Translations under genes and position numbers: made by a program
Assembly (NCBI RefSeq): GCF_036321535.1
Contig: NC_087454.1
Span: 21,142,001 to 21,206,000, forward strand
From: Camelus dromedarius
Taxonomy: Eukaryota
Direction of reading: 5' to 3'
DNA: 64,000 nt
The notes under the pieces: generated by a model
Told to the model about the DNA's origin: nothing
What the model saw: only the letters and a program-made list of their open reading frames with translations
Databases searched by the model: none
Part shown: positions 6,103 to 58,067 of the stretch, piece after piece
Position numbering within the stretch: the stretch's first letter is position 1
Layout of the letters: each line of letters begins with the position of its first letter

Positions 6103-13233
<7,131 letters not shown>

Positions 13234-30751: not shown

Positions 30752-30946
30752 ATCAGGGTGGGGCCAGAGGGGAAACGAGAAACAGGAAATGGCTCCTCCT
30801 CCAGCTGCCCCTTATACACAATGTAATAGTATGACTTCAAGGTTCCTGTATCAAATCCTCATAGCACATCTTAATTTTTAGTTCCAGTTCACCACCAAGA
30901 CCATATGTAATAGAATGGTGAAATAGTTTATGTTAACATTCCCCAA
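30752..30946 (+). pseudogene. Relic paralogue of DPB intron 1 (possible remnant of a deleted class II beta gene)
   Basis: 30777-30800 matches 43438-43461 at 23/24, and 30880-30946 matches 43462-43528 at 57/67 ungapped, in the same orientation and order. Confidence 0.5.
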
Positions 30947-32599
30947 ACTGAGACAGACACTCATCCGTGTCCCCGTACTTTGCTCTGCACACTGTGAGAG
31001 AGATATGACCTTAATCCATAATTGGGATTCAACCAATTAAACCAGCTAACACACTAGGGTCTCCCAAGGTGGTTTCAGATGCCCCTGAAAGAAGCTGGGA
31101 GGAATAAAGTAAAGCCTGGCAGGGTGGGGCAGGGACATCAGCGGACTAGTGGATACAGTACAATATGACGTGCTATAAAGGAAGACACTGAGTCACTAAG
31201 GGCTTAACGACTTTACTATGGGGAAATCCTGCAAAACAGTAGGTCTACTGGAAGAGGAGTCTTGTCTGCTACTTAGAAAAGGAGAAGAGCCCTGGAGGTT
31301 TAGAAGTGGTGAGAATTCTGGGTGAAATAAAAGGGGGGTCAAGCTGGGTAAGCAGCAGCATGAAGACGATGTGAGGGCTCATTCCGAGGAAATCAGCCCC
31401 ATGGTGAACAGCAACCATCCTTGTTCCCACGGCCCCATGCTATCGGCTAGAGAAGGACCCAGGGCAGAGCGAACGTTCCCTAGACTTACCTCCTGGCAGG
31501 ACACAAAATGCAGCATCTGCACCCACATCACAGGCCCAGGATATGTGCTCCCAGGGACTTAAAAATATGGAGAGTGGGGAAAGGCTCTCGCGTTGCCAAG
31601 ACAGCACCAGGGATGTCTAGCTCTGACACACAGGTATCTGTTGATCTCTGGGATTTCTCAGGAAGGATGCTGTTTAGGGAGAAGTCCCAGAGGAGACCGA
31701 GGCTTGTAGACCATTCAGTGTGGGGCCACCTTGTCACCATACTTCAAATTGGATATATATTAAGTGCTTTCTGTGCCAGGCCCTTTGCAAGGTGCTAAGT
31801 GCGACTAGACTCATAGACAGGCAGGAATTGGCGGGGGTGGGTCTCTGTGGACATTAATCACTGGTGCTGAGGAGCACAGAGATTCAAAGAGACTGGAGCT
31901 TTAAAGCAGATCTGACGCTGGGGACTCCCCTCTGTCCTCTTCCGTCGAGGAAAGATTGTCACCTGCAGTAGGACAGACATAGTGTGGTTAGGACTCTCAG
32001 TTTAGAATTGCATCCTTTCTCCCTCTACAACTGAGCCCTTCAGTTTCTTGCCTCACAAGCCCCTAAGAAGAAGGTGGTCTTTCCAGTAGATGTTGCCCCT
32101 GGATGAGAATCAGTGAGCCGTCAAGAGGTACCTAAGGAGATGTCATTTCACTCTCTCCAACATGCCACAGACTGCATGTTCTGAAACACCAGAGAGGCCC
32201 AACAAGGAGGCGATGGAAGTTGAAGGAAGTGGAAGTTGGGCACAGTGTATGAAGCTGCTCTTTAAACGGCCCCCAAAACCATTTAATACCAGGCCCGGGG
32301 GATACTTATCTTAGGTAACAGCCAATGAACCTCCATCACTATTAACTATTTCCTCCCTCCTGAAATTTCTGCTCCCTTGACTTATGTGATGAAATATTTT
32401 TCTAATTCTCCTGCCTCTCTGCTTCTTCAAAGTCTCTTTAAGCACCTCTCTTTTGTATAGTAAGAGTAAGAGAGGCAGTGCTGATGTAACGTATCCCCTG
32501 AGATCTAGTTTTTGCTCATGCTACACGCCCAGTGTGAGTCAGCGGGGTAGCCCCGCTGATCAGAGTTACTCAGGGAGCCAGACAGACCTTCATCTTGAC

Positions 32600-34861: not shown

Positions 34862-37800
34862 CTAATAGCCCCACCCCTGGGATGACTCACAGGGGCCCCT
34901 GCAACTGGGGACGCTCTCGGATAACCTGGTCTTCAGGACAATGGTGCCGGTGATGATGCCCACCAGGCCCACCGCCAAGCCCAGGGTGCAGACCGCGGTC
35001 TCCATTGTCTCAGGCACCTGGATCGGCTCCTGGGCCTCTGGGGAACAAAAGAAGATGGAATCAGGAAGCGCAGAGAATGTGGGGATGTGAAGGCTTAGAA
35101 CCCACGAAGTGGTGAAGTTTGAATAAAGTGACGATAAAATATGGGATTAAGGAAGCAGGTGTTGAGGGATGGCTCCTGGAAATAAAGGTGGTGTCAGGAC
35201 GGTGATGGCAAAGGTAGGGGTGGGAGGCATCCACATTAAAAAGAATAAAATTTTGCCATTTGTAGCAACATGGGTGGACTTGGAGGGCATTAGGCCAAGT
35301 GAAAAAAGTCAGACAGAGAAAGACAAATACTGTATGATATCACTTATATGTGGAATCTAAAAAATACAACAAACTAATGAATATAACAAAAAAGAAGCAG
35401 ACCCACAGACACAGAGAACAAACTGGTGTTTACCAGTGGGAAGCAGGGAGGGGTCATATAGGGGTGGGGGAGTGGGAAGTACGAACTGCTGGGTGTACTG
35501 TACAACACGGGGAAGAGAGCCACTATTTCGTAATAACTGTAAGTGAAAAGTAACCTTTAAAAATTGTATAAAATAAAAAGAATTTTAACAGTGGGGGCGT
35601 CCATACCCCAGTGCTTGAGGAGCGGCTGGTCCAGCCCCCAGTGCTCCACCCTGCAGTCATTGACGTCCTCGGCGGTGGGAAGGAAGGTCAGATAGTGGAA
35701 CTGGTGGAATCTGAATTCTGTGCTGGGCAGGAAGATGGTCTCAGCCACACCCTCAGTGACCGCCTGCCCATTGCGCAGCCACGTGACGTTGAGCACCGGC
35801 GGGAAGAACTTGTCCGCATGGCAGATGAGGGTGTTGGGCTGGCCCAGCTCCACAGGCTCCTTGGGAAACACGGTCACCTCAGGGGGCTCTGAGAGGGAAT
35901 GCAACCTGGTGAGTCTACTGCCTTTGGCTGAATTGCAAAGGACCCTCCACCCCAGGCCTTATATTCTCCAGATTAGGGCCTTCCTCTCTCAGGCCCACCT
36001 TTCCCCTCAATTCCAACCAAGGGCTCCCAGTTCAGAGTAGCAGCTTCTCATGCCCCTGACCTGGCCTCCCTCAGCCCAATCTTTATCTTGAATAAGAAGA
36101 AAATGCCTCTTCTGATGACCTAAGTACCCAACTTGTGGATCAAATACTACTTAGTTATGGGGAGGGCATAACTCATGAGTGCGTATTGGGGTCCCCCATT
36201 CTCTGTGTGTAGAGGGGCTCTCCCGTCCCTGCAGTTGGACTGTAGAGGAGTGGACAAGAGTGAGCAGTACCGGATGTGGCCCTGGTGTGGTTGGAGCGTT
36301 GGATCATGGTGTTCAAGTTCTTCCTTGCCATGACGATGTCAGCAATGCCCCTCTGAGCATCATAGTCAAAGGCATGAATAAACTCTGGCAGGTGCCAGAC
36401 AGTTTCCTTCTTATCCAGGTCCACGTAGAACTGCTCATCTTCATCAAATTCAAACATGTACTCCCCAGAAGGTTTGTGTGTCTGGACAAACTCGGCGTAC
36501 GTTGACACATGGTCCACTGCATGAAGAGAAAGAAAGGAGGCTGGAGAATGGGTGAACGTATAGGGCAGTGAACAGAATACAGGAAGCAGGTAGGTAAAGG
36601 GAAGGTTATTAGGATCACGAAGGAATAACACAGAAAATGAGAAATTCAAAATGAAAGTAAGGAGAAGAAAGAAATCGGAGGAAACAAGGAGAGAAATGAC
36701 TTATTGGGAATTCATACCAAGGGAGGAAGGGGGTAGGAAGGGATAAATTGGGAATTCAAGATTTGCAGATACTACTGTATATAAAATAGATAAACAACAA
36801 GTTTATACTGCATAGTACAGGGAACCATATTCGATATCTTGCAGTAACCTACAATGAAACAGAGTATGAAAACGAATATATTTATGTAAATGTATGACTG
36901 AAATGTTATGCTGTACACCAGAAATTGACACAACATTGTAAACTGACTATACTCCAATGTGGAAAAAAAAAAAAAAGAATATGAAAAGGAAAAAAATTCA
37001 GGGGTTTCCCTTGTCCCTGAAGAGTTAAGCATCCATCACTCCAGTATGATGATAGTAATGTTGAGCACAATAATAAGAATATTTATTGAGGACTTGCTAT
37101 GTGCATAATTTATTCATTGAATCTTCACACCCCCAGGGAAAGCTTTATTTTGCGTGTTCAGTAACTGACCACAGAGATGAGATAACTGTCCCAAGGTAAC
37201 ACAACTCCTTGTAGAAGCAATATTGACTTGTCCTCCCCCTCTCCAGTCCCACAGGATTTCAGAATCCTTACAGGACCAGACATCACATTAGTGATAAAGC
37301 TACAGAGCAGGGTGGGGAAGAGGAGAGAGTAAAGTAAAAATGTTTCAGAGTAGAAAATGTTTTAAATAGTGAAAGAAATAAAACATCTTTGTTCTTTTCA
37401 TAGACTTCAAGTTACTTTCTTAGCTCCAGGATAAAAATGGTTGGCTATGTAATTTTGTCCACAGAACTTTCATCTTAGGCATAACAAATGTAAAAGTGTC
37501 ATCGTCATTCATATGTTCACAAATTTTCTTGCTGAATTTATGTTTTAAAGTGTGGTTTCTGTTGGAAATCAAAGTTGCTGCATTTAAAACACCCATGGGA
37601 TAGTATCTTAATTTTAACTGGTATGTAAGAAGCAGCAAAAGGTTGACAACAAAGAAAAGTCTATTGGCATTACAGGGAAACAATAGAAATGAGAGAGTTT
37701 GGGGTGGAGAAAGGCAGAGGTACTAAGGTGAAACGACACTGCAGGGTTCATTGGTCTAACTCTCTAATTAAAGATTTGCCCTGGAAGCTCCTGACACGTG

Positions 37801-40800
37801 GAGAATCAGTCCTCTCCTTCAATGCTTCTGGTGACAGAATCCATTGACACACATGAGTACTTGCAGATTTCCATTGATTTTAGTGGTCAGAGAATCACTC
37901 ACCCACAAAAAGAAAAAAGAGAAAAAAGAAAGAACAAGCTGGGCTCCACAAATGTAGTTTGTTCACCTTGGGAGAATTCATTTTCATCATTTTCACAAAT
38001 TCTTTTTTTTTCATTATACAACCATGCATATTTTATGGTTAACAAAATATGCAATATATGCCTATAAATATTCTTCTGGGGTTTTCCAAGCATCTTATTC
38101 ATGATAGTTACCATTTGGGTGATTATGGTGCTGTCTAAAATTAAGCACAATAATCAAAATATCCCTTATGTAGTCACATAATGGTGTATAAGTTAATGGA
38201 TTTTCCAACTTCTGCCTCCTTGATTCTGTACACTGGATTCTTCCTCTATATTCTTTTATCCAAATTCAAACCATCACCTAAAACACACTGCAAATGTTTC
38301 TTCCTTCAAGCTCAGGGCAATCCTACCTACATTGAATTCCTATGCTTAATCACTATTTATTTAATAAATGGATAAATTACCTCATATTCACAAATTCTTA
38401 AAGATAAAGATCTGGGCATTTTTAAGTAAATTACACTCTTACACATGTTACTTTTCATTCTGCCAAAAAAACACGTATTATAAACCTTTAATCTTCAAGC
38501 ACTAAAGATATAACTCAGAAGATGAGGGTTTTGGTTTCAAGCTGCTTGGACTCCAAAGAATGAGAAAGACGAAGAAAAGATCACTGCTGAGTTATCACAA
38601 GGTATACACAAGATCCTAGAAGGGAGCCAAAGGGGATATTAAAATCAAAATGAGTGGGGAGGGTATAGCTCAGTGGTAGAGTATGTGCTTAGCAAGCACA
38701 AGGTCCTGGGCTCAATCCTCAGTAGCTCTATTTAAAAATAAATAAATGTTTAAAATAAATAAACCCAATTACCTACCCCCACAAAAAAGTTTTAAAAAAT
38801 AAAATCAAAATGAGATTTAAGTAAGGTTTCCCAAAGATGAGATTTACCTGACGTTAGCAAAGCAGAGGAAGGGGGAAATGGCATTTTTAGCCAGAGAAGT
38901 AGGCTCAGGCAGAGAGAGACATGAAAATGCGTGGAGAACTGCATGTCCTTCGGTATGGCTGGAGCTAAGAGGGGAATGTGGAGGGGGCTGTATTGTGCTC
39001 TGCCTCGTGTGCTAATTGGAGGTATTTGAATGGTATCCCACAGCCCATGGGAATTCTTGGAAGAACTTGAGAGTAACATGATCATATCCGTACTGGAAGG
39101 TGGCAACAGCAGGGAAGAGGGATTGGAGGAGGCTGGTTTGAAAGCAAGACCAGGAGGCTCTTGGGCAATCAGGTGAGAAGGGATGAGGGTGCAGATGAGG
39201 CAGTAACGCGGAGGGCAAGGAGACAAGTGGGTGTGTTTGAATGGCAGTAAAGAGATGCGAGCACAGGTATCAGTGGGTAGAAGTAAGGACATGAAGGAAT
39301 CCAGAACGAGCAGGCAATGTGGAGAACTGTGGCATCAGTGACAGGTAGAGAAGGATAGAGAAGGTAGAGAAGGATAAAGAAGTGATTGAGAGAAAATAAA
39401 ATGTGCTGCTGTTAGAAACATGCTGGGGTTAAATTTCTGGGAGACAAAGTGTAGTTGATATGAGGGCGGTTGAAATAAGTAAATGGGTCTCAAGTTAGAC
39501 GGTCCAGTAACATGGACCAGGAATCCTCGTGGCAAGTGAACTTAAAAGTTTGGATTAGATAACTCAAGAAAAGTGTATAAAGTCATAATAGCAGGGTCTG
39601 AATGTGTAGTCCTGCATCCTGGCAAACACGGACATTTAAGAAGAGGCTGAAAAGCAAGACATGGAAACAACCTAAATGTCCATCAATAGATGACTAGATA
39701 AAGAAGTTGTGGTGTATTTATACAATGGAATGTAAAAAAGANNNNNNNNNNNNNNNNNNNNNNNNNNNNNNNNNNNNNNNNNNNNNNNNNNNNNNNNNNN
39801 NNNNNNNNNNNNNNNNNNNNNNNNNNNNNNNNNNNNNNNNNNNNNNNNNNNNNNNNNNNNNNNNNNNNNNNNNNNNNNNNNNNNNNNNNNNNNNNNACAG
39901 AAACAGACTAACAGACATAGAAAACAAACTTATGGTTATCAGGGGAGAAAGGGGTTCAGAGGGGATAAATTCGGAGTTTGAGATTTGCAGATACTAATTA
40001 CTACATATAAAATAGATAAACAAGTTTCTACTGTATAGCACAAGGAACCATATTAAATATCTTGTAGCAGCCTACAATGAGAAAGAATATGTATGTATAT
40101 GTATGACTGAAACTTTATGCTGTACACCAGAAATTGACACAACATTGTCAACTGACTATACTTCAATAAAAAACTTAAAATTAAATAAAATAAAAAGAGA
40201 CTGAAAAGGAGAAGACTAAAGAATAGGAAGAAAACAAGGAGGAAGTATGCTTCTAAGACAAGGAATAAGAAGGAAATTTCAGGAAGGAGGAAGCAGTCAC
40301 ATCACAAACATCACTAATAACACAAGTAAGACACACATGGAGAGGTGATGGTGGGTTTGGGTTGTCTGGAGACCATTAGCGGCCCCACTGAGAGCAGCAT
40401 CAGAGATGGGGAAACAAAGGGGAGAATGCAGTTGGTTGAGGACTGAGTGAACCAGGAAAAAGTCAAAAACAAACATCGCAGACTCCCATTTCAAAAAGTC
40501 TACCTCTGAAATGTAAGAGAGACAGAGAATCTTGGGAAGAGGAGGTACCAGGGCTCTTCACTCATCAGTGATGTGACGGGGGATCATGAGACATTTATTA
40601 ACCTCTTTGCATCTCAGTCTTTCCAGTTCTAAAACGGAAGCCTTCCTGAAAAGTCTGTTGTGAAAACGAAGAGGAGATTTGGCACTTGCAGGTGTTTATC
40701 AATAAACAGCAGCTACTATGTTGTGGAGTGAAAGGAAGAAGATGACCTCACAAAAGAGGGAAAAGAATAGAGAAGAGAAACGGGACAGAAAAGAGCACCT

Positions 40801-40957
40801 GTGGGTTGTAAAACGTGCTGCGGTCACCCCCCCACCCCCCGCCCCCTGAGCACTCACCCTGGAAGGCGCCAGCTCCGTGGGGACTGAGCAGGGCAGCCAG
40901 GGTGAGGGCTTGAAGGATCATGACTCTGGTCTGGCTCCCTGTGTCTTCAAGGTGCAT
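34862..40957 (-). CDS. DPA: MHC class II DP alpha chain; ORF open through the TM, with a frameshifted cytoplasmic tail
   Basis: Exons 40858-40957 (100 nt; [33 protein letters not shown]), 36271-36516 (246; [42 protein letters not shown]), 35607-35888 (282; [24 protein letters not shown]...[16 protein letters not shown]) and exon 4 from 35037 ([11 protein letters not shown]...[18 protein letters not shown]) to about 34875. Exon sizes and DHVSTY/EFDEDE motifs are DP-alpha-like. The true end depends on exon 4 splicing; 34862 is the read-through TAG. Confidence 0.88.
35250..35585 (+). mobile_element. L1 3' fragment in DPA intron 3, about 20 nt from the exon 3 donor
   Basis: AAATTTTGCCATTTGTAGCAACATGGGTGGACTTGGAGGGC...ATGATATCACTTATATGTGGAATC with an A-rich end. 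Confidence 0.8.
36720..36975 (+). mobile_element. L1 3' UTR fragment in DPA intron 1
   Basis: ATAAAATAGATAAACAACAAG...GTACACCAGAAATTGACACAACATTGTAAACTGACTATAC plus poly-A. Confidence 0.8.
38656..38800 (+). mobile_element. Vic-1-like SINE, long-tail form, in DPA intron 1
   Basis: tRNA-like head; TSD AAAATCAAAATGAG on both sides. Confidence 0.88.
38820..39600 (-). mobile_element. L2 fragment
   Basis: Purine-rich antisense L2-like sequence (GAGAGTAACATGATCATATCC, GGAGGCTCTTGGGCAATCAGGTGAG). Confidence 0.45.
39655..40194 (+). mobile_element. 5'-truncated L1 with TSD in DPA intron 1 (includes N-run 39722-39896)
   Basis: Starts CAAGACATGGAAACAACCTAAATGTCC and ends A-rich. TSD AAGAGGCTGAAAAG (39641) / AAGAGACTGAAAAG (40195). 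Confidence 0.85.
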
Positions 40958-41081
40958 CTGCAGTGACAGACAGTGCGGAGAAAATGAGGCAAGGCAAGGA
41001 GGAGCTCTGATTCCAGGACTTATTTCTCTACCCCTGTGGAGGGAGAAGTGGGTGGAGATGAAACAGCTTGATGGGGCTCAG

Positions 41082-41121
41082 CCAACCAGAAAACGTCAGA
41101 AGGGGCATCTCTGTGGCTGGA
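41082..41121 (-). promoter_or_regulatory. DPA X-Y module, degenerate
   Basis: Minus strand: X-like TCCAGCCACAGAGA, 18-nt spacer, Y-like CTGGTTGG, about 125 nt upstream of the ATG. Confidence 0.65.
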
Positions 41122-42652
41122 AAAGAAAACGCTAGAACAGTGTTAGGACCAACACAGCCCAGAAAGCCCCAGCCTACGCGGGACTGGGGACAGGAGGAGG
41201 AAACTAAAACGGAGATACCATAATCGCCTTCCTCTTAGTGGTGTTGTTTGGAAATAGGTAATTGAAGTTGATTCTTGAGTACTTTTTATTTGTAATAACT
41301 TATGTGAATGGACATTTTCAAAATTTCATGTTGATTCTTAGTTTCATATAGGAATTCGTTTGACTGTTATCAAATGATATTATATTTACCATTTTACACC
41401 TTTGATCATTTTAGAGGAATCCTTTGGTGTTTCCAGACATACACACAGAAGGCAAACAATATTTAATTGTTCACTTCTAATTATTACTCTTTTTATTTCT
41501 TCTTCATAGAAGAATGTGGTGATATAAGGCACTTTTATTTAAATCTTATTCTTAAGAACAATTTCTCTAGTCATTTCATATGAAATCTAGTGGTAGATTT
41601 TTTATATGTTCTGTTTTATTACAGAGGGGTTTGGAACCATAGTAAACAGGTGTGGGACTATAGTAAGTTTTTCTAGTATTTAATATTGCCATGATAGAAT
41701 TTGTATTATTGTATTATTGAAATAGTGTGTTGTGTTGAGTAAAGAGTTTTTTGTGTTCTGAACTAATCTTTCATTAGAATAATTAACATTCTTTGATTCC
41801 TGACTGTGTGTAAGGCTCTGTTTGAAGAGATGCAGGTGCTAAGGATTATCGCAATTCGATTTCCAAATAAACGGCAGGGTCTCCATGATAGTCTCCATTT
41901 TACATGAAAGGAATTTGAGTCATAAGAGGTTTAAAAAAAAAAATCCAGGAAGTAGCAGAAAGGGGACTTCACAGCCAGGAAATTTCACTCTTGACCTGTG
42001 TCTGACCACTTTACTATAATGCATCCTGTCTCTAATAGAAAATCTAAGTTAAATAATAATGTACGATTTTATTCAATTCATCAATGATTTAAGTACTTCA
42101 AAAACTCTCTGATCTTTACATTTCTAAGGCATTTTATATGTACGTTCTCATTTCACCCCTCCCAGAGTTACTGAGAAGACAGGTGCTACCACCCCCATTT
42201 CCAAAGTAAAGAAACTGTGGCCCATAAAGGCAAGTAATTTGCCCAAAGTTGTGCACTTACTTCCATGCCTTATTTGGTATTAAAGCCCAGAGACCCTTGT
42301 TCCACATCCTTTATAACCGGACCTCTGTGAGGGGAAGGTGAACATCTGACCCCTTACGTGATGGCTGGTACAGCCTCCAGGACCAATTCAGAGTCCTGGG
42401 TGGACACTCTAATCCCCTGAGATCTTTAACATACTGCCTAGGACTTGCTCTTCCCCAGACCGCATCCCTGCAAGGGGGATTAGCACTCACCACTGAGCGG
42501 GAATGACATTCCTGCAATCTGCTCCAGGGCAAGGAGAACAGAAGGAAAAAAACAAAAACAAAACCAAAAAGACCCTCATGATTCATCCAGTTCCTCAGAG
42601 GCCCCTCCCTTTATTCTGCCTTCAATGAATCTTATACCTTGAAGTAGCATGT

Positions 42653-42700
42653 GCCTGACAGCAAGCTTCTGCCTGGAAAGTGACAATTCCTACTTATTGG
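42653..42700 (+). promoter_or_regulatory. DPB promoter: Y-box core ATTGG retained, X box degenerate
   Basis: CTTATTGG at 42693-42700, about 135 nt upstream of the ATG; only a partial AGCAA upstream. Confidence 0.45.
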
Positions 42701-42835
42701 TTCCTTTTTTGGAATCTGGCCACACCCAGGGGATGTAGGAGGGGTCCAGGCTCACCATCTCTCATGTTTTAAGAGTGAGGCCCATTGAGTGAGAGCTGCT
42801 CTGACTCTGATTCCTGTCCTTTCCCAGGCTGCGGG

Positions 42836-45800
42836 ATGGCAGTCTTTTGGGTCACTGGGGCCCCTGGGATGGCAGCTCTGATGAAGTCCCTGGCGATGCT
42901 GAGCTTCCCTTTGGCTCAGGGCAGAGACACCCCAGGTAAGTGCAGAGCTGCTGCTCTTGGAGGGTCTGGCTCTGGGGAATGATCCTGGGGGCTTTCCCCA
43001 TGTGGGCTCCCTCCGTGGGAAAGGCTTTGGGGCTCGGACATTCATCCAAGGGCCAGGATTCCCATTAGAGAGAGAAAGAGATCAGGGTTTGTGTCTGCTG
43101 GACACAGTGGTACCTGGTGGTCTGAAATGACTTTGGAGGGACAAGATTCTCACAGAGGGGTCCTCAAGATAACATTTCAGCATCAAAAGATAGGAAAGGG
43201 GAACTGTGTTTAGTTTGCATTGTCCAGGATCCCAGATACAGGACCAGTGCTCCAGGTGGGGGCCCCTTTCACAGAACCAAACGGGAACCCTGTCCCAGGA
43301 ACAGCGATGGCCGGGGGGGGAGAGGAGGGTAATGAGGACCAGCTGTGGGGAAAGCCAGCAGGGTAACTATTGCAGCTGACTGTCCCCCACATCAGGAACC
43401 AGATCAGAGCACATCAGGGTAGGTTCTGAGAGGAAGTGAGAAACAGGAAATGGCCCCTCCTAGCTCCAGCTCCCCACCAAGACCATGTGTGCTGGAATGG
43501 TGAAGTCGTTTATGTTAAAATTCCCCAACCTTTCTCTCCCCATCCATAAAACCAGCCCTACTCCTTCCTGAGAATCAGTTTCTCTCAGGCTCCTTCCCCA
43601 ATTTCTGGGGGTAACAGCAATGAAGACTCTTAAATTCATCTACTCAAACACCATCCCCTTGTCCTCATTTCTCAGACAGAAGGAAGGGGAAATTTTTCTG
43701 GCATTTATCCTCAGGTGAACACAGAACTGGACAAGGGCGGCTCAGCTGTGGAGCCCGTGTCCACAGATGAGAGAAGAAATGGAGATGCTTGGGTCTTGGA
43801 GGGCTGGAAGGGGCTGTGGGCTCAGGAAATAGCTGGTGAGATGAGATGATGTCCAACAGGAGGTGAGAGGGGAGTAGTGCAGGATGGGCACAGGAGAAGC
43901 TGTTCTGGGCAGCAGGCAGATGCTGATAGGAAGACACTGGAAATTGAAGCTTGGGGCTCCCTTGCAGTGAATAGTGAGCAGAGTGGTGGGTGGCAGTGGG
44001 AGGAGTAGAGTGAGGTGGAGAGATCATTGGATTCAGGTTAGTAAGAGGCCTGAGATGGAGTCCCCTCACCCTGTGAGAGAGACACCTGGGGGAAGGAGAG
44101 GGTGGGCCCAGAGCTCCCCGCACAGTTTCAAAGCCGAGGGACTCATTACTGAGTGAAATCTGACATCCAGGGAACTTGGATCTGATGGGTCGGGAAGATT
44201 CCTCCATTTCCTTTTTGCGCCTCCAACTCTTTCAGCAGAAATGGAAAGGGATGAAAGAGGAAAACCTGGCTTAACAGGCCCTGGGCGAAGCTGGAACTAT
44301 CGAGAAGGCCTTCGTGACTACTGGGTCATAAAGAAAATTGTGTAGAAAGGGAACATCCAACTCATGGATGCAACAGATTTGTAGCTCTAGTGGCCTCTTT
44401 AAAACTCCATTGTTGGGGGAGGGTGTAGCTCAGGGGGAGGGTGTAGCTCAGTGGTAGAGCGCATGCTTAGCATGCAGGAGGTCCTGGGTTCAGTCCCTAG
44501 TACCTCCATTTAAAAATTATTTTTTAATTTTAAATCCATCGTTCATGACATTCACCATCCCAAAATTTATTTATTTATTTATTTTTAATTTTGCTTTTTA
44601 TTGAAGTGTAGTTGACTTACAACATTAGTTTCAGGTGTACAGCAAAGCGATTCAGTTATTCTTATACATACATATCTATAGAAACCATACCGGCTTAAAC
44701 CCTGGGACTCCACCCATCACATTACCTGGGTAGCGGCAGAAGCCTGGGGTTTAAACTTGTATTTACTCCATTTCTTCTGTCTCCCTTTCCCAAGAGAAAG
44801 AAAAGGTGGGAAGAAACAATCAGCATTATGTTAATAAAAGCTTCTTTTCAAGCATGTAAGGCCGTGCCCCAAGGGCAGTTCCTGTGAGCCATTCTGAACC
44901 AACCAGGGCTCTGTCCTTTGTGTTTCTTTCAGCTCAACATTAATCTAATCACCAGTCACTTTACTGAGGACCTTCCTAATGCACAGATCAGACGAAACCA
45001 CTCGCTGGCTAATAAATCTGCTCCCTGTCAGGAAACTCCCCGAACTCCTCGGCCTGGCGCAGACAGCAGACGGCACTGCCGGCCTGTCCTGTCTCCCACC
45101 ACCTCACTCACTTTCCCTTTCCCTGCTGCTCCCTCTGGTGAGATTCTGCTCCTCCTTATAACCCCAGATGAAACATCAGCTCCTCTGAACCCTCATCTCT
45201 CCCTCGGCCTCCAATTCTCAGCAAATTTAAGGTGCTCTTCACATGTCCCCACAATCCCGCTGCCACACCCCTGTGAACCCACCTGTCACTGCGCCCATAC
45301 TGCGTCCACCTGCTTGTCTCCCACTTAGACCTTAAGGTTCCCTGAGGCCATGCTCTTCATGATTTATACTGGAAAGGACCTCAGAGATTATTTAGTTAAA
45401 GCCCCCGTTTACTGGATAAGAAAACTTCGGACCAGGGAGGTTCTATGATGTATCCAAGGTCACCAGGATACATTTACATCAACAGTAGTGACTAACACTG
45501 TATTGATTTGTTGACTCATTGAGAGAGAACTGCAGAGGCTGGAGGTGAGGCGAAGAGAGGGGAGAGAGAAGAGACTGAGAACGTGGTGAACACAGAGTTT
45601 TCATTTTGGCTGTGCTCTGGGTCAGCGCTCCCGGGACAGGCAGAGTGACCCCCCTGAGTTCTCTAACCGGACACTCTTCGAGAACAAGGATGGAGACTCG
45701 AGAGGAAAGAGGCAAAAGACAGGAAGTGCATGGCCTTGGATGCAGCCACTCAATGTCACAGGGAAAGTGGGCAGAGCGTCTCATGGGTGTTGGAGTCTCT

Positions 45801-48694
45801 CCCAGCCCTGCCGTGGACTCTCACTCTCCACAGAGCTGTACGTGTACCAGAGGAGGAGTGACTGCTATGAGTTCAACGGGACGCACCGCTACCTGGAGCG
45901 ATACATTTACAACAGAGAGGTGTACGTCCAATTCGACAGTGCCGTGGGGGTGTTTGTGGCTGTGACGGAGCTGGGGCGCCAAACTGCCAAGAACTGGAAC
46001 ATCCAGAGGGACTTCCTGGAACTGAGACAGAGCGCGGTGGACACGGTGTGCAGACACAACTATGAGTTGGACAAGGGTTTCACCCTGAAGCGCACAGGTG
46101 AGAGGGCTGGTGGAGGAGAGAAGACCCTGGAGGGGGTGGGCTCAGGCCGCAGAGGAGGGGAGCCATCTCCATCTCATCTCAGGTCCCAGTTTGAAATCAA
46201 AAGTCTTCATGGTGAGCAGGGGACCAGAGTGGCATGGGAAAGAGCCAGACTCCCTGTTATTCAAACACGAAATTGCTAAGAACATTGAGTTTGCGGATCT
46301 TCCTCCAAAATTTATTTTATTTTTTGGTAGATGAGACCAAGAGATATATATATTAAATGAAGAATGAATCAAGCTACTTCATGTCTTCTCTCGTTTTTAA
46401 AATATCAGACTCATAGATCAAAAGAATGCTGTTGGCAGGGGAGAGTACAGCTCAGTGGTAGAGTGCGTGCATGGAATGCATGAGGTCTTGGGTTCAATCC
46501 CCAGGACTTCCATGAAAATAAATAAACAACAAACAAACAAACAAACCTAACTACCCACCTCCCCAAAAAAAGTTTTTAAAAAAAAGAACGGTATTGGCTG
46601 CATGAATTCTAATTCCAAGATCACAGCCGGCAGGGTTACACAGCCTTTTGAACCAAATGGGAAAATGTAACTTTAGTTGCTTTACAACAGGTTTAACATT
46701 TCTGTTCAAAGATATTAGTTACCAGCTTACACGTTTCTGGCCAAAGTGCTACAGCGTGTCAACTTTGACCCGCTCCTGTTCTTCTCTGCTCTTTTCCTCG
46801 TTGTGTCTGATAAGGTCTTTCTTGGAACGTTTGAACACTTTATTCTGTGTTTCCCTTTCTGTTCCCCAAATTCTGCCTCCAAGTAGCTTAAGGTGGATGA
46901 GATATTTATTTCTAACATCGAGAGGTCAGTTTGGCAAGACAATCGCTAACTGCTGCTTTAGCTGTCTCCGTTGTCACTACCAGATTCTTCTCTGCACTTC
47001 TAGTCCCACCTAAAGTGAACGTCTCCCCCTCCAAGAAGGAGGCCCTGCAGCCCCACAGCCTGCTTATCTGCCACGTGACAGATTTCTATCCAGGCCACAT
47101 TCAAGTCCGCTGGTTCCTGAATGGACAGGAGGAAACAGCTGGGGTTGTGGCCACCAACCCGATCCATAATGGAGACTGGACCTTCCAGCTCCTCGTGATG
47201 CTGGAAATGAGCCCTCAGCAGGGAGACGTCTACACCTGCCACGTGGAGCACCCCAGCCTGGACAGACCTGTCACCGTGGAGTGGAGTTACTCTCTGATGA
47301 CCCTCTAGACTCCAGGCTTGGGGGTCCACTCACTACACATTGGGGCCATACCACCACGTGTTTTTCCTCATCAGCCCTCTAACTGTGGTCTGGGCTCAGA
47401 GCAATGGAGATCTGGTGATTTCAGCATGTGTTTATCCCTGCCCTGGGGAATCCTTAAGGATCTCTCCTTCTTAGAAAACCTCAGAAAGGTAACCACCTTT
47501 ATGACTGGCCCTCAGACATGGGAACCAGCCTCTCCCCTCTGTCCCCGTTCAGTCCCTTACATTGGGACCTGATGGGCTGACATTGCCTCCTGTGGAAGTC
47601 ACTGCTCTGGGATCCAGAACTTTGGGGGTGATTTCCACATTTACTCCTTCCCCAGTGTGGCTTCAGGCTGGGCCTTATCCTCTCCCTTTTCCCTCCACAG
47701 CATAGTAGATGGGGCTCTGGGTGTCAGGTAGGGCCCAGGGGTTGCGGCAGGTGGAGGTGAGGCTGACCCTGGCATCTGTTCTTCTCAGAGGTGCAGTCGG
47801 ATTCCGCCCGAAGCAAGATGCTGACCGGAGTCGGGGGCTTTGTGCTGGGGCTCATCGCCCTCGTAATGAGCTTCATTCTCCACTTTCAAAGATGGCGAGG
47901 CAGGAAACTTCTGGAAAGTGGTTGGTATTGCCTTTCTACTGTCTCATTCTATTCTCCAGTGATGACATTGGAAAAGAAAAGCAAAACGACAGAGCAAAAG
48001 AGGTCACTGAAATCAAATTCTGAAAATGCAAAGACAGCCCTGTAGGGAGGAAGCTGCCTAGATGAGCTCTTGGTCCAGTAAGACACCTGAGCCAGCTGAT
48101 GACCCCATTCTGAAGAGTGGCTTTTTTAAGGCTGGGGCAGGCTGACATCTACAAATGGGCCCTTGCTTTAATTCCCAGTGACACGGAGAATGGGGTGCAA
48201 ACATTTGTATAATTTTCTAAAATGTTGCCGTCCTTTACTTTTTAATGACTGAATTTGTCTTCCCTGTCACTTTCATTTCAGGACAACAGGGACCTCAACC
48301 AACAGGTGGTATTTCTACTCCCTTCTTCCTTCTTGGGATGTAGTTCATTTCACCGCACCATGGGTTTGGGAGCATTTAACGAATATGCTGTGTTCAGGAG
48401 ATAACACAGGAAGTGCCCTGAGGGTGAGGAGAAACTCTCAGAGGCTGTCCCATTTTTTCAAGTTGAACCAAACTGCCCCCAGTTCTTGGTCCCATCTTCA
48501 TCTCTGGGTGGGTATAAGCAGTGAGTACTACTTTGCCCCATTGCTGAAGGAAATTCCAGAAATTCTCTTCCATTTTTCATCAAGCCAACACTCAGACTGT
48601 CTCTATAATTTTTTTTCCAACTCCTGGGATTCTCGAGGGAAAAGAAATATAGCCTCTTTTTAATTTCTTCTTCTTCACAGGACTCCTGAACTGA
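42836..48694 (+). CDS. DPB: MHC class II DP beta chain, all six exons open (264 aa if spliced); two weak donors
   Basis: Exons 42836-42935 (100 nt; [11 protein letters not shown]...AQGRDTP), 45834-46097 (264, the DP-type shortened beta1; both Cys, NGT, W, RHNY), 47004-47285 (282; [31 protein letters not shown]...[16 protein letters not shown]), 47789-47899 (111; [20 protein letters not shown]), 48282-48305 (24) and 48681-48694 (GLLN*). Head-to-head with DPA. Intron 3 donor is GTTACT and intron 4 donor is GCAGGA. Confidence 0.88.
44415..44520 (+). mobile_element. Vic-1-like SINE with a duplicated 18-bp head, in DPB intron 1
   Basis: (GGGGGAGGGTGTAGCTCA)x2 followed by GTGGTAGAGCGCATGCTTAGCATGCAGGAGGTCCTGGGTTCAG. 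Confidence 0.88.
46438..46581 (+). mobile_element. Vic-1-like SINE, long-tail form, in DPB intron 2
   Basis: tRNA-like head; imperfect TSD AAAAGAATGCTGTTGGC / AAAAGAACGGTATTGGC. Confidence 0.85.
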
Positions 48695-48825
48695 TATCAA
48701 ACACCACATGTTGACTGGGAAAAAGTATTTCTGATATTTCCATTGTCCAGCAATGTCCCACCTCCAAAAAGGACATCACTACTGAATTGTGCCCCTGACA
48801 CTTGCTTCTGAGTCTCTGCCTTTTA

Positions 48826-48926
48826 CAATGAGCTGTTTTGTTTTGTTTTGTTTTTAATGGAGGTACCGAGGATTGAACCTAGGACCTCGTGCATGTGCTC
48901 TACCACTGATCTATACCCTCCCCTAG
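48826..48926 (-). mobile_element. Vic-1-like SINE in the DPB 3' UTR (antisense)
   Basis: Perfect 18-bp TSD CTGAGTCTCTGCCTTTTA (48808, 48927); internally shortened head. Confidence 0.85.
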
Positions 48927-49161
48927 CTGAGTCTCTGCCTTTTAATTCAGCATACTTCCTCTTTCTCAAGTTCTCTAGACTATAGTGTGCCCTTTCCTGA
49001 GGCACATACATAAACCACCTAAATCCAATATTATTGTCTCCCTTTCCTACAGAGAGGAAGGAGATGGTCATGTGACTATGTTTATGCTTGAAGGGTTGGA
49101 TGACCACTGGGTCCAGTGAACAGCCTGGGGATGTCCTTGGTGCTTTCCTCAGGTGTGGAGA

Positions 49162-49167
49162 AATAAA
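49162..49167 (+). terminator. Candidate DPB polyadenylation signal
   Basis: First AATAAA after the DPB stop codon. Confidence 0.5.
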
Positions 49168-50004
49168 ATTCTTGATGGTGATCCATTCTCTTTATTGAAT
49201 AGGAGGGCAACTGGTAGTGAATGTCCTAAAATTTGCTTTATTTCATTGTAGATGCCCAAATTCGTGTTGCACTCTTACCAGTGCCGGGTGGAACCATTTC
49301 TCCTAGTAATCCCAGACAGAACAGACACTGAGCCTGGATTTTGCCTCTGAAATTCATACAGGACTAGTACAGCATGGTAATTATTAAGAATATGGTTTCC
49401 AAGTTTAAAAATCAACATAAGATCATAATTATAAATAACAGGTATAAGAGCATAACATATTATAGCATTCTTTTTATATTATTATTTGCATCAAATTATA
49501 GAAGCAGGCTTGTCCTATAACTCCGTGTTCATTACATCACCACAAACTCTCTCCCTTTTGAGCCATCCAATGGGATGCACATCTCCAGTTTCCAAAAAGT
49601 CAAAGATACATGTATATCAGCTTTTTCAGATATAGGCCTGCTTTTAGAATACAGTTTTTTTTTTTTATGATTTTTATAAATCATTTTAATTGATGTTTGA
49701 GGCTAAGACAGAAGTCATATTTGCTTTGGTCATTTTGTGGTATGGTGTGTCACTTAAGTCTGAATTTAATATAATAGTAATCAGGAAAAATTCTAATTCC
49801 TGTAATATTGATAGATTATAATATCAGTTTTCAAAAACAGCAAGGCCTAAGCCTTAAACCAAGCTTAAAGCATTTCTCTTTTTTAACTGTCCTTCTTGCG
49901 TGTGACTCTGGGAAATCATTTTGATGAATATGTTCATAGATTATGACTCTAAGTCAGTTTTGGTGATTCTATGTATTATGAGATACCAAACCCAAATGCG
50001 GGGC

Positions 50005-50544
50005 TGTGTTGGGGGTCACCAAGACCAGCTCAGTTTAGATCATTCACTAAGAGGACTCACGGGACTCATTACGTAGCTGTACACACGGCTATGATTAATT
50101 ACAGCAAAGGAAGCAAAGCAAAATCAGCTAAGGGAAAAGGCACGTGAAAAACTCAGAGAAAACAGGTGCAAGCTTCCAAGGGTCCTCTCCCATCGGAGCC
50201 GCAGGACTCGCTCAGTTCCTCCAGCAACGAGTTGTGACAACACGTGTGAATTACATCGGCCAGGAAAGCCCAGAGGAGACTCGGCACTCAGGGTTTTTCG
50301 TGGGGACTGGTCTCGCGGGCACCCTCTGCACAAACCAAAGTTCCAGACTCCCAGAAAGAAAGCAGGTGTTCAGCATAAACCATATTGTTTGTTCAGACAG
50401 CTCAGGCACATTCTTAATCAGCTCTGGGAATGGTGGGAACCCTCCCAAAATCCAAGTTCCTAGATGCCAGCCAGGGGCCAGCCTTGTAAGCAGGCCTTTC
50501 AAAGGAAGGTGGTCAGGACTGCTATGTTAACTCTGTTCTGCACA
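50005..50544 (-). mobile_element. MER21-like solo LTR
   Basis: Minus strand begins TGTGCAGAACAGAGTTAACATAGC and ends ...GGTGACCCCCAACACA (TG...CA); about 540 bp. Confidence 0.7.
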
Positions 50545-50559
50545 GGGGCAAACCATCCT

Positions 50560-50672
50560 TTTTTTTTTTTTTTTTTTTTTTTAATGGAGGTACTGGGGAT
50601 TGAACCCAGGACCTTGTGCATGCTAAGCATGTGCTCTGCCACTGAGCTATATCCTACCCCTCGCCCACCCCA
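50560..50672 (-). mobile_element. Vic-1-like SINE
   Basis: Long poly-T plus reverse tRNA-like head; TSD CAAACCATCC. Confidence 0.88.
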
Positions 50673-52109
50673 CAAACCATCCATTTTGTTGACAATTTCC
50701 AAGATAACATGAGTATCCATGTTTTCAAAGAAAAGCATAGATTGATCAGAAAACTCTTTTAAATCTAAGTTTTCTGGAAACATTGATTATTGCAGAAGAC
50801 CTAGAGCTAAATTCATATAATTGTTTTTCATTATTATTACTATTATGTGAAATTATTATTACAAACGTTCTATGAGTCCTATTAGCATTTGAGCAGTTTT
50901 TGAAAAGCTGAAGTTACAAAGTAAGGATGCAGGTGAAAGCATTCTGTTCTGTGAAAGGTTTATTTTTTGCTCAATGGCATGAGAAATTACGCATGCTTTC
51001 TATTCTGTGGTGTTTCTAGGAAAGATTAGAGGTAGCCCATCTCTCAGTGCCCCAAATGAGAAAGAGAAGTTGTAATTCGCTACATCCACTCTTAATCATC
51101 TCAGGAAAAAGAGAGAGGCAGCCCACTTTGTGCCCAAGGAATTTCACAACCAAGGAGTTTGACAATGAATGATCCTCTCACTGACTGCACTGCTTAAGAT
51201 GAGAGAGGCTTCACCATTTGGGATTTTGAGAAGAAAGAAACAAACCTTGTCAGCAGAGAACTATAAAACCAGTTTATAATGCGTAATAATGAGTCATAAT
51301 TGAAAGGAACTTAGTTTATAAACCATTTTCACTGTTATCTTAAGAGTCCTGAACATTTCACTCTCTGCTTGTAAAGCCGAACTGATAGTTAATTCAGGGT
51401 TTGATAAAAAGAAGAAAGTCTCCCTGATTTTCTGTTTGGCCAAGAATTCCCCCTAATGTGATGTCATCATAACACTGTCATAAAGCCGTGAGTTAATTCA
51501 GAATTTTAATCCTCGAGTCAGCTTTTGTAGTCTGCCCTCTTCGGGGTAGAGGACTGTCATAAGGAAATAAAGAAGGTAAATGATTTAGTACTTCTTTACT
51601 TTCCCTTTTTTATTGGACAACTGTAAGGAATTAAAACTGTGGGGTGTTTTTTAATTCTTATGAGAAATGTTGTAAGATTTTTGAGGAGTCAGATTATCCA
51701 TGGCAAAGAATCTGAGTTTTAAGTGTTCTTTAAAGCTAGGGAATATTAAATAGGGCCCCATCTCCACCTAGTGGCCAACAGTGGTATTTAGACTTGGAAC
51801 AAGAAATAAGGATTTGTCAATAATTTGGGGTATTCTTAATGAAAACATTAGAGAAAAGGTGAGGCATATAGAAATCAAAATAAGTATGGCCAAATGTAGA
51901 GTTTTGCGGTTTGGCTTGGCGGTGCCTTTGGCAGCACCCCTGAAAATATGCTTATCGTGCTTTGCTGCCAAACCCCAAATATATTTTAAAATAATTGAAT
52001 ATAAAGAAACATACCAACAGAAGGCAACCCTTCAAAATTAACTTTGAGAAGAAGAAGGTCCACGTAAGCAGAGTCCTCATATCTATAAAAGAAGTGCGAT
52101 CATCAGAAA

Positions 52110-52604
52110 CAGCCCAACAGAACTTTCTGCTCTGATGGAAACGTTTATATCTGAGCTGCCCAATACAGAAGCCACTGGTCGTATGTATTCTTTTTTAATG
52201 TTTATTGAAGTGTAGTTGATTTACAGTGTTAGTTTCACGTGTACAGCAGTGATTTCAGTTATACATACACATACATATATATTTTTTCTTTTCAGATTCT
52301 TTTCCATTATATGTTATTACAAGAAGTTGAGTATAGTTCCCTGTGCTATACAGTAGGTCCTTGTTGTTTATCTATTTTATATATTGTAACACGTGTGTGT
52401 TAATCCCTGACCCCTAACTTATTCCTCCCCGACCTTCCCCCTTTGGTAACCATAGTTTGTTTTCTATGTCCGAGGCCACCTGTACTCTTAGCGCTGAATA
52501 TACCAGAGGCTGGTGCAACTAAGGAGCTGAAATTCCATTTAATTCTAAATTAGTTAAATTTAAAGTATTGAATGTGACTGGTGGCTACCATATTGGATGG
52601 GCAG
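52110..52604 (+). mobile_element. MER3-like hAT MITE split by an antisense L1 3' fragment (about 52190-52470)
   Basis: CAGCCCAACAGAACTTTCTG...GCCACTGG, then the L1 tail, then ...GGTGGCTACCATATTGGATGGGCAG; the halves are colinear with the copy at 55119-55321. Confidence 0.6.
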
Positions 52605-53653
52605 AATAAAGTTTACGATCTTTTTCTAAAAAACTGTAGGCCCTCTCTTAGCAGCTTTTAATGGAGGTAGATCCATCTGTAGGATAAGCTGGTAGGGAAT
52701 CGAAAAATGAAAAAGAATTTGATAAGCCAGTGAAGATAGAAGGTAAGTCTTGTCTAGTCATGGATCATTAAATCTGGGGATAGCAGAATATCAAAAACAA
52801 AATAGGCCCACCAGCAACTTAATAAAATTACAAGAGAGGTTTAAAAAGCGTCAAAAATCGTCCAGTTCTAGCAGATACAGAAGCTACAGCCACAGCAATA
52901 ATCTTGGCAAACTCTCAAAGCCAGTTTGAAAGGGCTAGGAATCACTAAGACAAAACTTGAAGAACACATTTCTCTTAGTACGTACAGGAAGGGGGCACCT
53001 CAACACACCTGCACTGGTTCACCCTCTGAGTTTAAAGAGCTTTGCCCTAAAGATCACGTCAGATCTTCTCATAGGACAGCACAGATAGCTCCAGTGTCCT
53101 TCCCTCCAGATCTGTTACAGTATTCGATCTGTCTGGAAACACTATGCTGTATTAAAATACTTTGGGCGCAGGACAATGTGGCAGAATTCTAGGAACTTTG
53201 GGATACAGGCTCAACGGCAACTTTTAATTAGGGAACTTAATCTATTAAGAGGGCTCTTTGACTACTGGCGCTTTCAGAGGAGAAAGTACCTAAGGGAATA
53301 GGTTGTGATAACATTAAAGGAGATTACGGAAAACCAAAAATGTTTCTATGGTGATTTCACCTGCCCCCTGGGTATGTTACTTGAATTTACTACTGCAATT
53401 CTGGGAAATGGAAACGCTCCCACTTTGAACCTTGGGATTCTACTTCCCCACCAAAAAATGTAAGTATGAAACAGTGCCAAGTCTCTAGTAGAGTATGTAA
53501 AATAACAATTATGATAAAATCGTTGGAGAAACGTGACATAATCCATCTCACCAAAAGAACTCTTTAACAACTCATTTTGGCCAGTAAAACGGTAGGTGAA
53601 TCTCGGAAGTTAATTGTGAATTATAGTAGTATTAAGAATAACAGCTAATTCTT

Positions 53654-53815
53654 TTTTTTTAGAGAGATTTAAAAACATTTTGTGTGTGAGGGGGGAGGGA
53701 GGTAATTACGTTTATTTGTTTATTTACTTTGTTTTTAGAGGAGATACTGGGGATTGAAACCAGGACCTCATACATGCCAAGCATGCACTCTATCACTTTG
53801 AGCTATACCCTCCCC
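53654..53815 (-). mobile_element. Vic-1-like SINE, long-tail form
   Basis: TSD CTAATTCTT (53645, 53816). Confidence 0.85.
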
Positions 53816-53824
53816 CTAATTCTT

Positions 53825-54267
53825 AATATTACTCAGCCATAGAAAAGAGTGAAATATTGCCATCTGCAGAACATGGATGGATCTAGAGAATATTATACTT
53901 AGTGAAGTAAGTCAGACAGAGAAAGACCAGTACTATATGATATCACTTATATGTGGAATCTGGAAAATAATACAAATGAATCTATATGGAAAACAGAAAC
54001 AGACTCACAGACATAAAAAAACAAACATATGGTTGACAAAGGAGGGGGGAAGGAGGGAAGGACAAATTAGAAGTATGATACAAACCATTATACATTAAAA
54101 AGGTAAGCAACAAGGATTTACTGTATAGCACAGAGAATTATATTCAATATCTTATAATAACCTACAATGGAATATAACCTGAAAAAATATATAACTGAAT
54201 CACTTTGCTATACCCCTGAAACTAACACATATTGTAAATCAACTATACTTCAGTAGAATTGTTTAAA
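53825..54267 (+). mobile_element. 5'-truncated L1 3' end
   Basis: AATATTACTCAGCCATAG...ATGGATCTAGAGAATATTATACTTAGTGAAGTAAGTCAGACAGAG...AACTATACTTC; 20-bp imperfect TSD. Confidence 0.85.
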
Positions 54268-55118
54268 AAGAATAGTAGCTAATTCTTAAATAGTACTTAC
54301 TAGATGCCAGTGACTGTTCTAAGAATTTATATATACTTAACTCATCTAATTATTAAAAAAAATGTGGTTAGCACTGTACCTGATATCATTTCCTCAGTAA
54401 AAGATCTTTCTAAATCAGTCCTTGATTAGCATGTTTGCATCCATCTGACTGATGCATTCTTTTCAATACTAATAAACTATGTTCACCACCTGCTTGCTTT
54501 CACTGGCTACCCCTATATTTATTATACTACCACAGTAAATTCTTCCATCCAAGGGCATAATCCAATAAAACAGAATTTAAACAGATGACCTAAATCCAAT
54601 TCATATATTAAAATTGTTTATTACACTAATGACATGTTTCCATGAGTGATTTGAAAACAATTATGCCTATGAGGAACTTTATGGGGGTGGTAGAAATAGC
54701 CTTTATCTTGATTGTGGTAGTGATTACACAATGAATATATTTGTCACAATTCAGAACAGTACAGCTAAGAAGGATGAATTTTATTGTGTGTAAATCATAT
54801 CTCAGCAAACCTGATATTTAAAAAAGCAACTGCACCCAAAAACTCTGTCTTCCCTTATTGATTTTATGATTAAAAAGGAATGAACCATAAAGTCATAACA
54901 ATTTCAGTAAATTTGGGGGGAGAAAAATTCTGCCCAAGATCCAGCAAAAAGCCATTGCCCTTGAAACTCCCTCCCCAAAACAAGAACAGAAGTTAATTGG
55001 CATGTTTGCATTCTGAAAACAGCACATCCCACATTATATTAAACTTGGATCTCTCCATCAGATTACTGAAAATGGAGCCAAATTCATATGGATCTTTAAA
55101 CAGCAAGATGCCTTAGAG

Positions 55119-55321
55119 CTGTGCTGTCTGATATGGTAGCCACGAGCTACATGTGGCTGTTTAGATACATTAAAATTCAATACAATTTAAAATTAAGTTC
55201 TTGAGGTGCGCTAACCACATTTCAAGTGCTTGAGAGCCACACGTGGCTGGTTGCTGCCATACTGGGTTGCACAGATGTAGAATATTTCCATCGTCACAGA
55301 AAATTCTATTGGCCAGCACTG
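55119..55321 (-). mobile_element. MER3-like hAT MITE
   Basis: About 200 bp with inverted termini and an internal GCCAC...GTGGC palindromic arrangement. Confidence 0.7.
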
Positions 55322-57932: not shown

Positions 57933-58067
57933 GTTTTTTTTTTTGAGGGTGAGGGTAATTAGGTTTATTTATTTATTTATTATTACTTTTTTAATGGGGG
58001 CACTGGGGATTGAACCCAGGACCTCCTGCATGCCAAGCATACATTGTACCACTGAGCTATACCCTCC
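57933..58067 (-). mobile_element. Vic-1-like SINE, long-tail form
   Basis: Reverse tRNA-like head and GGGTAATTAGGTTTATTTATTT tail. Confidence 0.85.

Follow-up and report, generated by a model that had tools for sequence, protein, structure and literature searches.

Genes at the Locus

[quoted passage not shown] All positions given are window positions. DPA occupies the minus strand and DPB the plus strand, and the genes are arranged head-to-head with their start codons (40957 and 42836) separated by 1,878 bp. The pair is located between DOA and COL11A2, and the evidence presented here points to a pair in early decay in the dromedary. An earlier note on this DNA, made from the sequence only, had proposed an open DPA/DPB pair in an apparent camelid. 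The host was correctly recognized: on either side of a masked run of N, the window matches C. dromedarius GCA_036321535.1 (CM070328.1:21174836-21211619) with 100% identity. This run (39742-39896, 155 nt) is inside DPA intron 1, and the corresponding interval in the source record is also exactly 155 nt. The mask therefore has its true length and lies between colinear flanks, leaving every reading frame unaffected.

The DP pair is already known, annotated, and published, and it is not a newly found working isotype. Protein-coding RefSeq models exist for DPA1 in dromedary, Bactrian camel, and wild camel (XP_010992922.3, XP_010947453.1, and XP_014411158.1, respectively) and for DPB1 in the same three species (XP_064332698.1, XP_074204566.1, XP_032318677.1, and others). 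[quoted passage not shown] Because of this annotation and earlier use in the camel literature, the novelty that the earlier note attached to the pair does not stand for C. dromedarius, C. bactrianus, or C. ferus. DPA and DPB are unmentioned in the text of the main camel MHC papers.

DPA has five coding exons, all on the minus strand. Exon 1 (40957-40858, 100 nt) encodes the signal peptide, and its ATG at 40957 matches the start of XP_010992922.3. Exon 2 (36516-36271, 246 nt) encodes the alpha1 domain (Pfam MHC_II_alpha, PF00993, E = 7.5e-36) and is 100% identical to dromedary KAB1261248.1. Exon 3 (35888-35607, 282 nt) encodes the alpha2 immunoglobulin (Ig) domain (Pfam C1-set, PF07654, E = 1.5e-23), where two substitutions, Y192N (found throughout Camelus) and K178Q, are located. 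Exon 4 (35037-34891, 147 nt) encodes the connecting peptide, a hydrophobic transmembrane segment, and the start of the tail, and it is followed by a GTGAGT donor at 34890. The coding part of exon 5 (31962-31901, acceptor CTGCAG) was located by tblastn with bat, meerkat, and otter DPA proteins; it encodes the last 19 residues and a TAA stop codon. Exons 4 and 5 were missing from the exon list of the earlier note, and exon 5, which is 3 kb beyond exon 4, lies outside the interval it considered. Together the five exons encode 278 amino acids identical to RefSeq XP_010992922.3, and all splice sites are GT-AG, with donors GTGAGT, GTACTG, GTATGG, and GTGAGT. Both alpha2 cysteine motifs (LICH and DCRVEH) and both alpha chain sequons (NHT and NVT) are present. 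With an MHC_II_alpha domain, a C1-set domain, a transmembrane segment, and a short tail, the product has the makeup of an MHC class II alpha chain.

We considered whether exon 4 is frameshifted, as its tail frame is unlike that of human DPA1, and rejected this: bats, meerkat, and otter use the same frame with a conserved fifth coding exon, and the 278-residue RefSeq protein equals our model. Just downstream of the DPA stop codon, a 1.1-kb block (30761-31882) is 72% identical to sequence downstream of meerkat DPA and is probably a conserved 3' untranslated region.

DPB has six exons on the plus strand. Exon 1 (42836-42935, 100 nt, donor GTAAGT) encodes the signal peptide and agrees with the gene start called at this locus in the source record. 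Exon 2 (45834-46097, 264 nt) encodes the beta1 domain (Pfam MHC_II_beta, PF00969, E = 7.4e-28), and exon 3 (47004-47285, 282 nt) encodes the beta2 Ig domain (Pfam C1-set, PF07654, E = 1.9e-28). The donor of intron 3 (47286-47291) reads GTTACT. Exon 4, encoding the connecting peptide and transmembrane segment, is 111 nt long in its canonical form (47789-47899) and extends to 47920 in RefSeq. Exon 5 (48282-48305, 24 nt) is cytoplasmic and, like its GTGGTA donor, is conserved in badger and bat. Exon 6 (48681-48694, 14 nt) ends in the terminal TGA. The frame is free of internal stops, and the product is 264 amino acids long with canonical exons or 271 with the exon 4 extension. Cysteines are present in beta1 (SDCYEF and VCRHNY, the Cys15-Cys79 pair) and beta2 (LICHV and YTCHVEH), as is the beta chain sequon NGT. 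The beta1 domain with its cysteine pair, the C1-set domain, and the transmembrane segment are those of an MHC class II beta chain. The exon sizes reported in the earlier note (DPA 100/246/282; DPB 100/264/282/111/24/14) were all right according to sequence and splice sites, and its account of stop-free frames, Ig cysteines, N-glycan sites, and a head-to-head spacing of about 1.9 kb was likewise accurate.

Residues of our DPB model agree with those of dromedary XP_064332698.1 (321 amino acids). That model also splices from within intron 4 to exons approximately 10 kb downstream, beside COL11A2 (42836-59619), and looks like a read-through or chimeric model. Intron 4 itself has an open frame of about 48 codons (47900-48045), the translation of which resembles the read-through tail of a meerkat Ensembl model (GKKLLESGCYCLSTIS..). 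This likeness could be due to chance or could reflect an alternative unspliced tail.

Splice Site and Coding Changes in Camelids

Each exon with 30 nt of flanking sequence was aligned with its counterparts in other camelid assemblies (CamDro3, which is a second dromedary assembly, plus those of Bactrian camel, wild camel, and alpaca) as well as in badger, meerkat, and a bat. At the DPB intron 3 donor, Bactrian camel, wild camel, alpaca, badger, and bat have GGA|GTGAGT, and both dromedary assemblies have GGA|GTTACT. The change is derived: a dromedary-specific 4-bp deletion at 47286 replaced the conserved GTGAGT donor. By the 5' splice site consensus, GTTACT has lost the purine at +3 and the G at +5, and position -1 was already a base other than G. 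Complementarity to U1 is reduced to four scattered matches, compared to six contiguous matches before the deletion. Reading through into intron 3 meets an in-frame TAG after seven codons, upstream of the transmembrane segment, so this intron has no alternative donor that would preserve the frame.

The canonical donor of DPB intron 4 is also altered, as it is GAG|GCAGGA (GC) in all camelids compared to G|GTAAGA in badger and bat. RefSeq camel DPB models use a GT donor at 47921 instead, which is 21 nt downstream, in frame, and adds seven residues. An unspliced intron 4 would not close the frame and would still leave a membrane protein, with its ectodomain, its transmembrane segment, and a longer tail; the shared GC donor therefore need not inactivate the gene. 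DPB therefore does not have consensus-like splice sites at every intron, given GTTACT at intron 3 and GC at intron 4.

The Camelus DPA substitution Y192N falls in the alpha2 Ig domain, within its Y-x-C motif, at a column that is Y in 41 of 43 homologues. No frame-disrupting coding mutation was found in the DP genes of dromedary (two assemblies), Bactrian camel, or wild camel.

The alpaca orthologues are dead. Alpaca DPB has two nonsense codons, 158 (TGG>TGA) and 218 (CAG>TAG), and its RefSeq model ends at 157 amino acids. In alpaca DPA, exon 4 has a 1-bp deletion causing a frameshift ahead of the transmembrane segment as well as a 15-bp deletion. Frame disruption of the kind expected in an unprocessed pseudogene is thus present in alpaca and absent from Camelus.

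Selection and Divergence

Deep pairwise ratios of non-synonymous to synonymous substitution rates (dN/dS) were 0.22 for DPA (camel-meerkat), 0.36 for DPB between camel and badger, and 0.28 for DPB between camel and bat. These values indicate that the lineage to which the camel genes belong (type 2, described below) was constrained for most of its history. Between dromedary and alpaca, divergence was 2.65% in non-exon sequence and 2.1% in exons. When changes were polarized by outgroups, the alpaca branch had approximately 21 exon substitutions (15 non-synonymous and 5.5 synonymous; dN/dS ~0.8), compared to a neutral expectation of 20.3. The Camelus branch had approximately 12.5 (7 non-synonymous and 5.5 synonymous; dN/dS ~0.37), fewer than the 20.3 expected (P(≤12) = 0.034). 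Approximately 2.3 disabling changes per branch would be expected under neutrality; alpaca has three, and Bactrian camel has none (probability 0.10). The ratio of non-synonymous to synonymous changes did not differ significantly between the camel and alpaca branches (Fisher's test, P = 0.46), with few changes available for comparison. Overall, the substitution and lesion counts modestly favor continued constraint in Camelus. Among Camelus species, exon divergence was 0.42-0.54% compared to 0.20-0.31% in non-exon sequence.

Dromedary Haplotypes and Nominal Association With MERS-CoV Status

The window and CamDro3 differ at seven exon sites, so they represent different haplotypes. In DPB exon 2 they differ at 45883 (synonymous) and at 46012, which is responsible for the single non-synonymous difference in beta1 (D/E at codon 93); alpha1 has none. 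Only 45883 of these two sites is among the single nucleotide polymorphisms (SNPs) that Lado et al. (2021) report as segregating in dromedaries. Eight of their nine “HLA-DPB1-like” SNPs are at exactly the positions where the window and CamDro3 differ, indicating that the window carries, at 42620-48289, their minor haplotype, which has a frequency of approximately 4-9%. Exon diversity between the two haplotypes is twofold that predicted from non-exon diversity (seven differences compared to 3.4 expected, P = 0.06). The 4-bp donor deletion is on both haplotypes.

The minor haplotype was nominally associated with MERS-CoV status (PMC8224694). The nine associated SNPs have identical test statistics, consistent with complete linkage disequilibrium, and the authors allow for linkage with other MHC sequences (PMC8224694). 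Presence of the deletion on both haplotypes casts doubt on the “HLA-DPB1-like” product as a peptide-presenting chain in dromedaries. If dromedary DPB cannot present peptide, association signals in this gene may reflect linkage only.

Two of the DPB residues in the window, D93 and R223, also occur in C. bactrianus XP_010947452.1, and the CamDro3 residues E93 and Q223 also occur in C. ferus. This pattern of sharing may reflect trans-species polymorphism or introgression between dromedary and Bactrian camel.

Functional State of the Dromedary Pair

We favor, with a probability of roughly 0.55, the interpretation that dromedary DP is an annotated divergent pair in early decay, in which DPA is intact except for Y192N and DPB is probably crippled at splicing. 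Most of the beta chain transcript would be mis-spliced at intron 3. Retention of the intron would yield a beta chain without a transmembrane segment, and skipping of exon 3 would remove the beta2 domain. As a consequence of such mis-splicing, little or no DP heterodimer would be expected at the cell surface. The dromedary pair would then represent the first stage of a loss that is already complete in alpaca, and a working DP pair may persist in Bactrian and wild camels. The earlier note had left the choice between a functional and an only just decaying isotype open; the latter fits best, considering the open frames in three Camelus species, the lost DPB donor in dromedary, and the alpaca lesions. 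Camelids would offer a graded series for dating class II isotype loss, with Bactrian and wild camel intact, dromedary hit at a splice site, and alpaca dead.

Several observations weigh against decay in the dromedary. Strength of the intron 3 donor was judged from the consensus and U1 complementarity, not by measurement or MaxEnt scoring, and splicing does at times proceed from weak donors. The gene itself tolerates some weak sites, as indicated by the conserved GTGGTA donor at DPB exon 5. The intron with the GTTACT donor is still modeled in the RefSeq dromedary DPB proteins, and coding-frame lesions are absent from all four Camelus assemblies. The dromedary sample consists of two haplotypes only. 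The evidence for constraint in Camelus is statistically modest: under neutrality, absence of disabling lesions since the camel-alpaca split has P = 0.10.

A less probable alternative to decay is that dromedary DP works fully as a third classical class II isotype. The weak intron 3 donor and the GC or downstream donor at intron 4 would be used well enough for DP to present peptides alongside DR and DQ. In the four Camelus assemblies the frames are open and only one structural residue is altered, the models are protein-coding in RefSeq in three species, and the Camelus branch has a dN/dS of ~0.37 and fewer substitutions than neutrality predicts. The twofold excess of exon diversity between haplotypes (seven compared to 3.4, P = 0.06) and the nominal MERS-CoV association of the minor haplotype also speak for this reading. 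However, the intron 3 donor change is derived and specific to dromedary, with the +3 purine and +5 G gone next to a non-G at -1, and Y192N strikes the Ig Y-x-C motif. The shared test statistics of the nine SNPs leave room for linkage as the source of the association. Transcripts offer weak evidence in the same direction: three camel RNA-seq assemblies hold spliced full-length DOA and camel RNA-seq assemblies have no DPA or DPB transcript on record, but camel DQA is absent from them as well.

It is unlikely that both DP genes had already lost function before camels and llamas separated (for instance, through the intron 4 GT>GC change), so that every camelid has only relics and the Camelus frames are open by chance: the GC donor is common to Camelus and alpaca, the whole of the alpaca branch appears neutral, a lesion-free Camelus branch still has P = 0.10, and interspecies exon divergence in Camelus is not below non-exon divergence, but the Camelus branch has ~12.5 substitutions instead of 20.3 (P = 0.034) with dN/dS ~0.37 compared to ~0.8 in alpaca, unspliced intron 4 need not inactivate DPB, and DPA is lesion-free apart from Y192N.

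Two DP Lineages in Placental Mammals

DQ, DR, opossum, and turtle sequences served to root the trees of DP genes. In these trees the camel genes are nested in the DP clade (support 100/96 for DPA and 100 for DPB), which together with their position between DOA and COL11A2 identifies them as DP. Within this clade, type 1 DP comprises genes of Xenarthra, Afrotheria, and Euarchontoglires, including human DPA1/DPB1. Type 2 DPA (support 100/100) unites camel, bats, and carnivores with several further sequences: the second copies of tree shrew and pika, a dugong copy of low quality, and a gelada translation that resembles a pseudogene. The matching DPB clade (support 100) contains camel, bats, carnivores, and one tree shrew copy; Old World monkey DPB fragments fall with type 1. 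Type 2 is distinguished by motifs in alpha1, alpha2, and the tail and by the extra DPA exon. Type 1 is marked by GGLANIA in alpha1 and a short tail ending in ..DPRAQGPL. The camel genes are not orthologues of human DPA1/DPB1, as they fall in the type 2 clade together with second copies from species that also have type 1. The trees and motifs place the camel pair in an old type 2 lineage of DP, separate from human DPA1/DPB1.

The camel pair shares several properties with human HLA-DPA1/HLA-DPB1, including position between DOA and COL11A2, head-to-head orientation, domain order, and exon sizes (signal peptide, alpha1/beta1, alpha2/beta2, and transmembrane). In contrast, the camel genes are in a clade (100/100) apart from all DPA1-type sequences, alpha1 is only ~70% identical between the types, and alpha N62 is D in camel. 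The camel DPA tail is in another frame than the human tail and has an additional coding exon, giving 278 amino acids compared to 260.

The camel genes are probably the orthologues of the primate DPA2/DPB2 pseudogenes. This assignment is based on the grouping of the gelada gene and on the layout of relics in meerkat and dugong. The gelada Ensembl translation (P0048), which looks like a pseudogene, has type 2 signatures in alpha1, alpha2, and the tail and falls with camel DPA in the tree. In meerkat (L007:23509-24437) and dugong (L014:36298-41006), DPB relics that contain frameshifts or stops are located tail-to-tail 3' of type 2 DPA, and the transmembrane exon of these relics matches type 1 DPB queries only. 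The meerkat arrangement matches the human DPB1/DPA2 layout, and that of dugong is similar. Unlike the primate DPA2/DPB2 pseudogenes, the camel DP frames are open. In the camel DOA-DPA and DPB-COL11A2 intervals, tblastn and blastn with type 1 and type 2 DPB queries found no DPB relic. The stretch at 30752-30946, considered as a remnant of a second DPB, was rejected as such, and it forms the far end of the 1.1-kb block downstream of DPA exon 5 that is shared with meerkat.

Close counterparts of the camel genes are RefSeq models from bats, mustelids, and meerkat (“RLA/HLA class II DP alpha-1 chain-like”), which belong to the type 2 clade and have the same five-coding-exon DPA. Their DPA tail is also that of camel (KTRR..S.PGCRG.C followed by an acidic end), as known from predicted gene models. 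Camel differs from them in DPA Y192N and K178Q, in DPB R121T and H138P, and in the two altered DPB donors. Dog, cat, giant panda, and horse carry DP pseudogenes at the position of the camel pair, between DOA and COL11A2. They show varied decay: panda DPA has been described as nearly intact with a single lesion, and horse has two DPB pseudogenes. Compared to these, the Camelus genes have no coding lesion, and their sole candidate inactivating changes are at DPB donors; alpaca resembles the pseudogenes. Published comparisons report no functional DP for horse, cattle, pig, dog, cat, and panda. The earlier note placed the camel pair in a clade where DP is thought lost, and for these species that is consistent with the literature, but intact-looking DP models are now in RefSeq for many laurasiatherians, including bats, mustelids, and meerkat.

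These relationships raise the tentative suggestion that placental mammals inherited two DP pairs. Type 2 would have become the DPA2/DPB2 pseudogenes in primates and the sole DP of Laurasiatheria, and in bats, some carnivores, and the Bactrian and wild camels it would still function as an isotype distinct from others; we regard this whole scenario as doubtful. If true, type 2 DP differs from human DP in the groove (alpha N62D within a well-conserved alpha1) and in a longer acidic alpha tail provided by the extra exon, and dromedary and alpaca show isotype loss in progress within one family. Because “DP” of camels, bats, and carnivores apparently derives from a lineage that is dead in primates, it should not be equated with HLA-DP for function.

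Dugong, tree shrew, and pika hold both DP types, and every laurasiatherian sequence that was retrieved is type 2. Type 1 genes of pika and rabbit carry a type 2-like alpha2 exon (STEFRF motif), which suggests exon 3 gene conversion between DP paralogues. Relative to camel, badger DPA has a 1-bp gap in exon 3 (L006:2211-2491), and one Rhynchonycteris bat DPA copy has several indels (L008:1771-3044). Type 2 DPA is thus decaying in some other laurasiatherians too.

Neighboring Genes and Intergenic Region

Gene order in the window is BRD2 (~7.6-13 kb, plus strand), DOA (~25-27.6 kb, minus strand), and the DPA/DPB pair. Directly after the DPB model, a gene of 1,736 residues is called on the minus strand at this locus in the source record; it is read as COL11A2 from its size and position. 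Five N runs besides that in DPA intron 1 (5304-5531, 5560-5725, 8206-8434, 10610-10749, and 20105-20232) are mostly in or near BRD2 exons.

The 1,878-bp intergenic region (40958-42835) is the putative common promoter region of the divergent pair and contains blocks conserved with meerkat, badger, and bat. Putative X-box-like, cyclic AMP response element (CRE)-like, and Y-box-like motifs, read by eye, are present upstream of each DP start codon and are conserved with carnivores. The core of the DPA Y-box is GTTGG in camel and meerkat alike.

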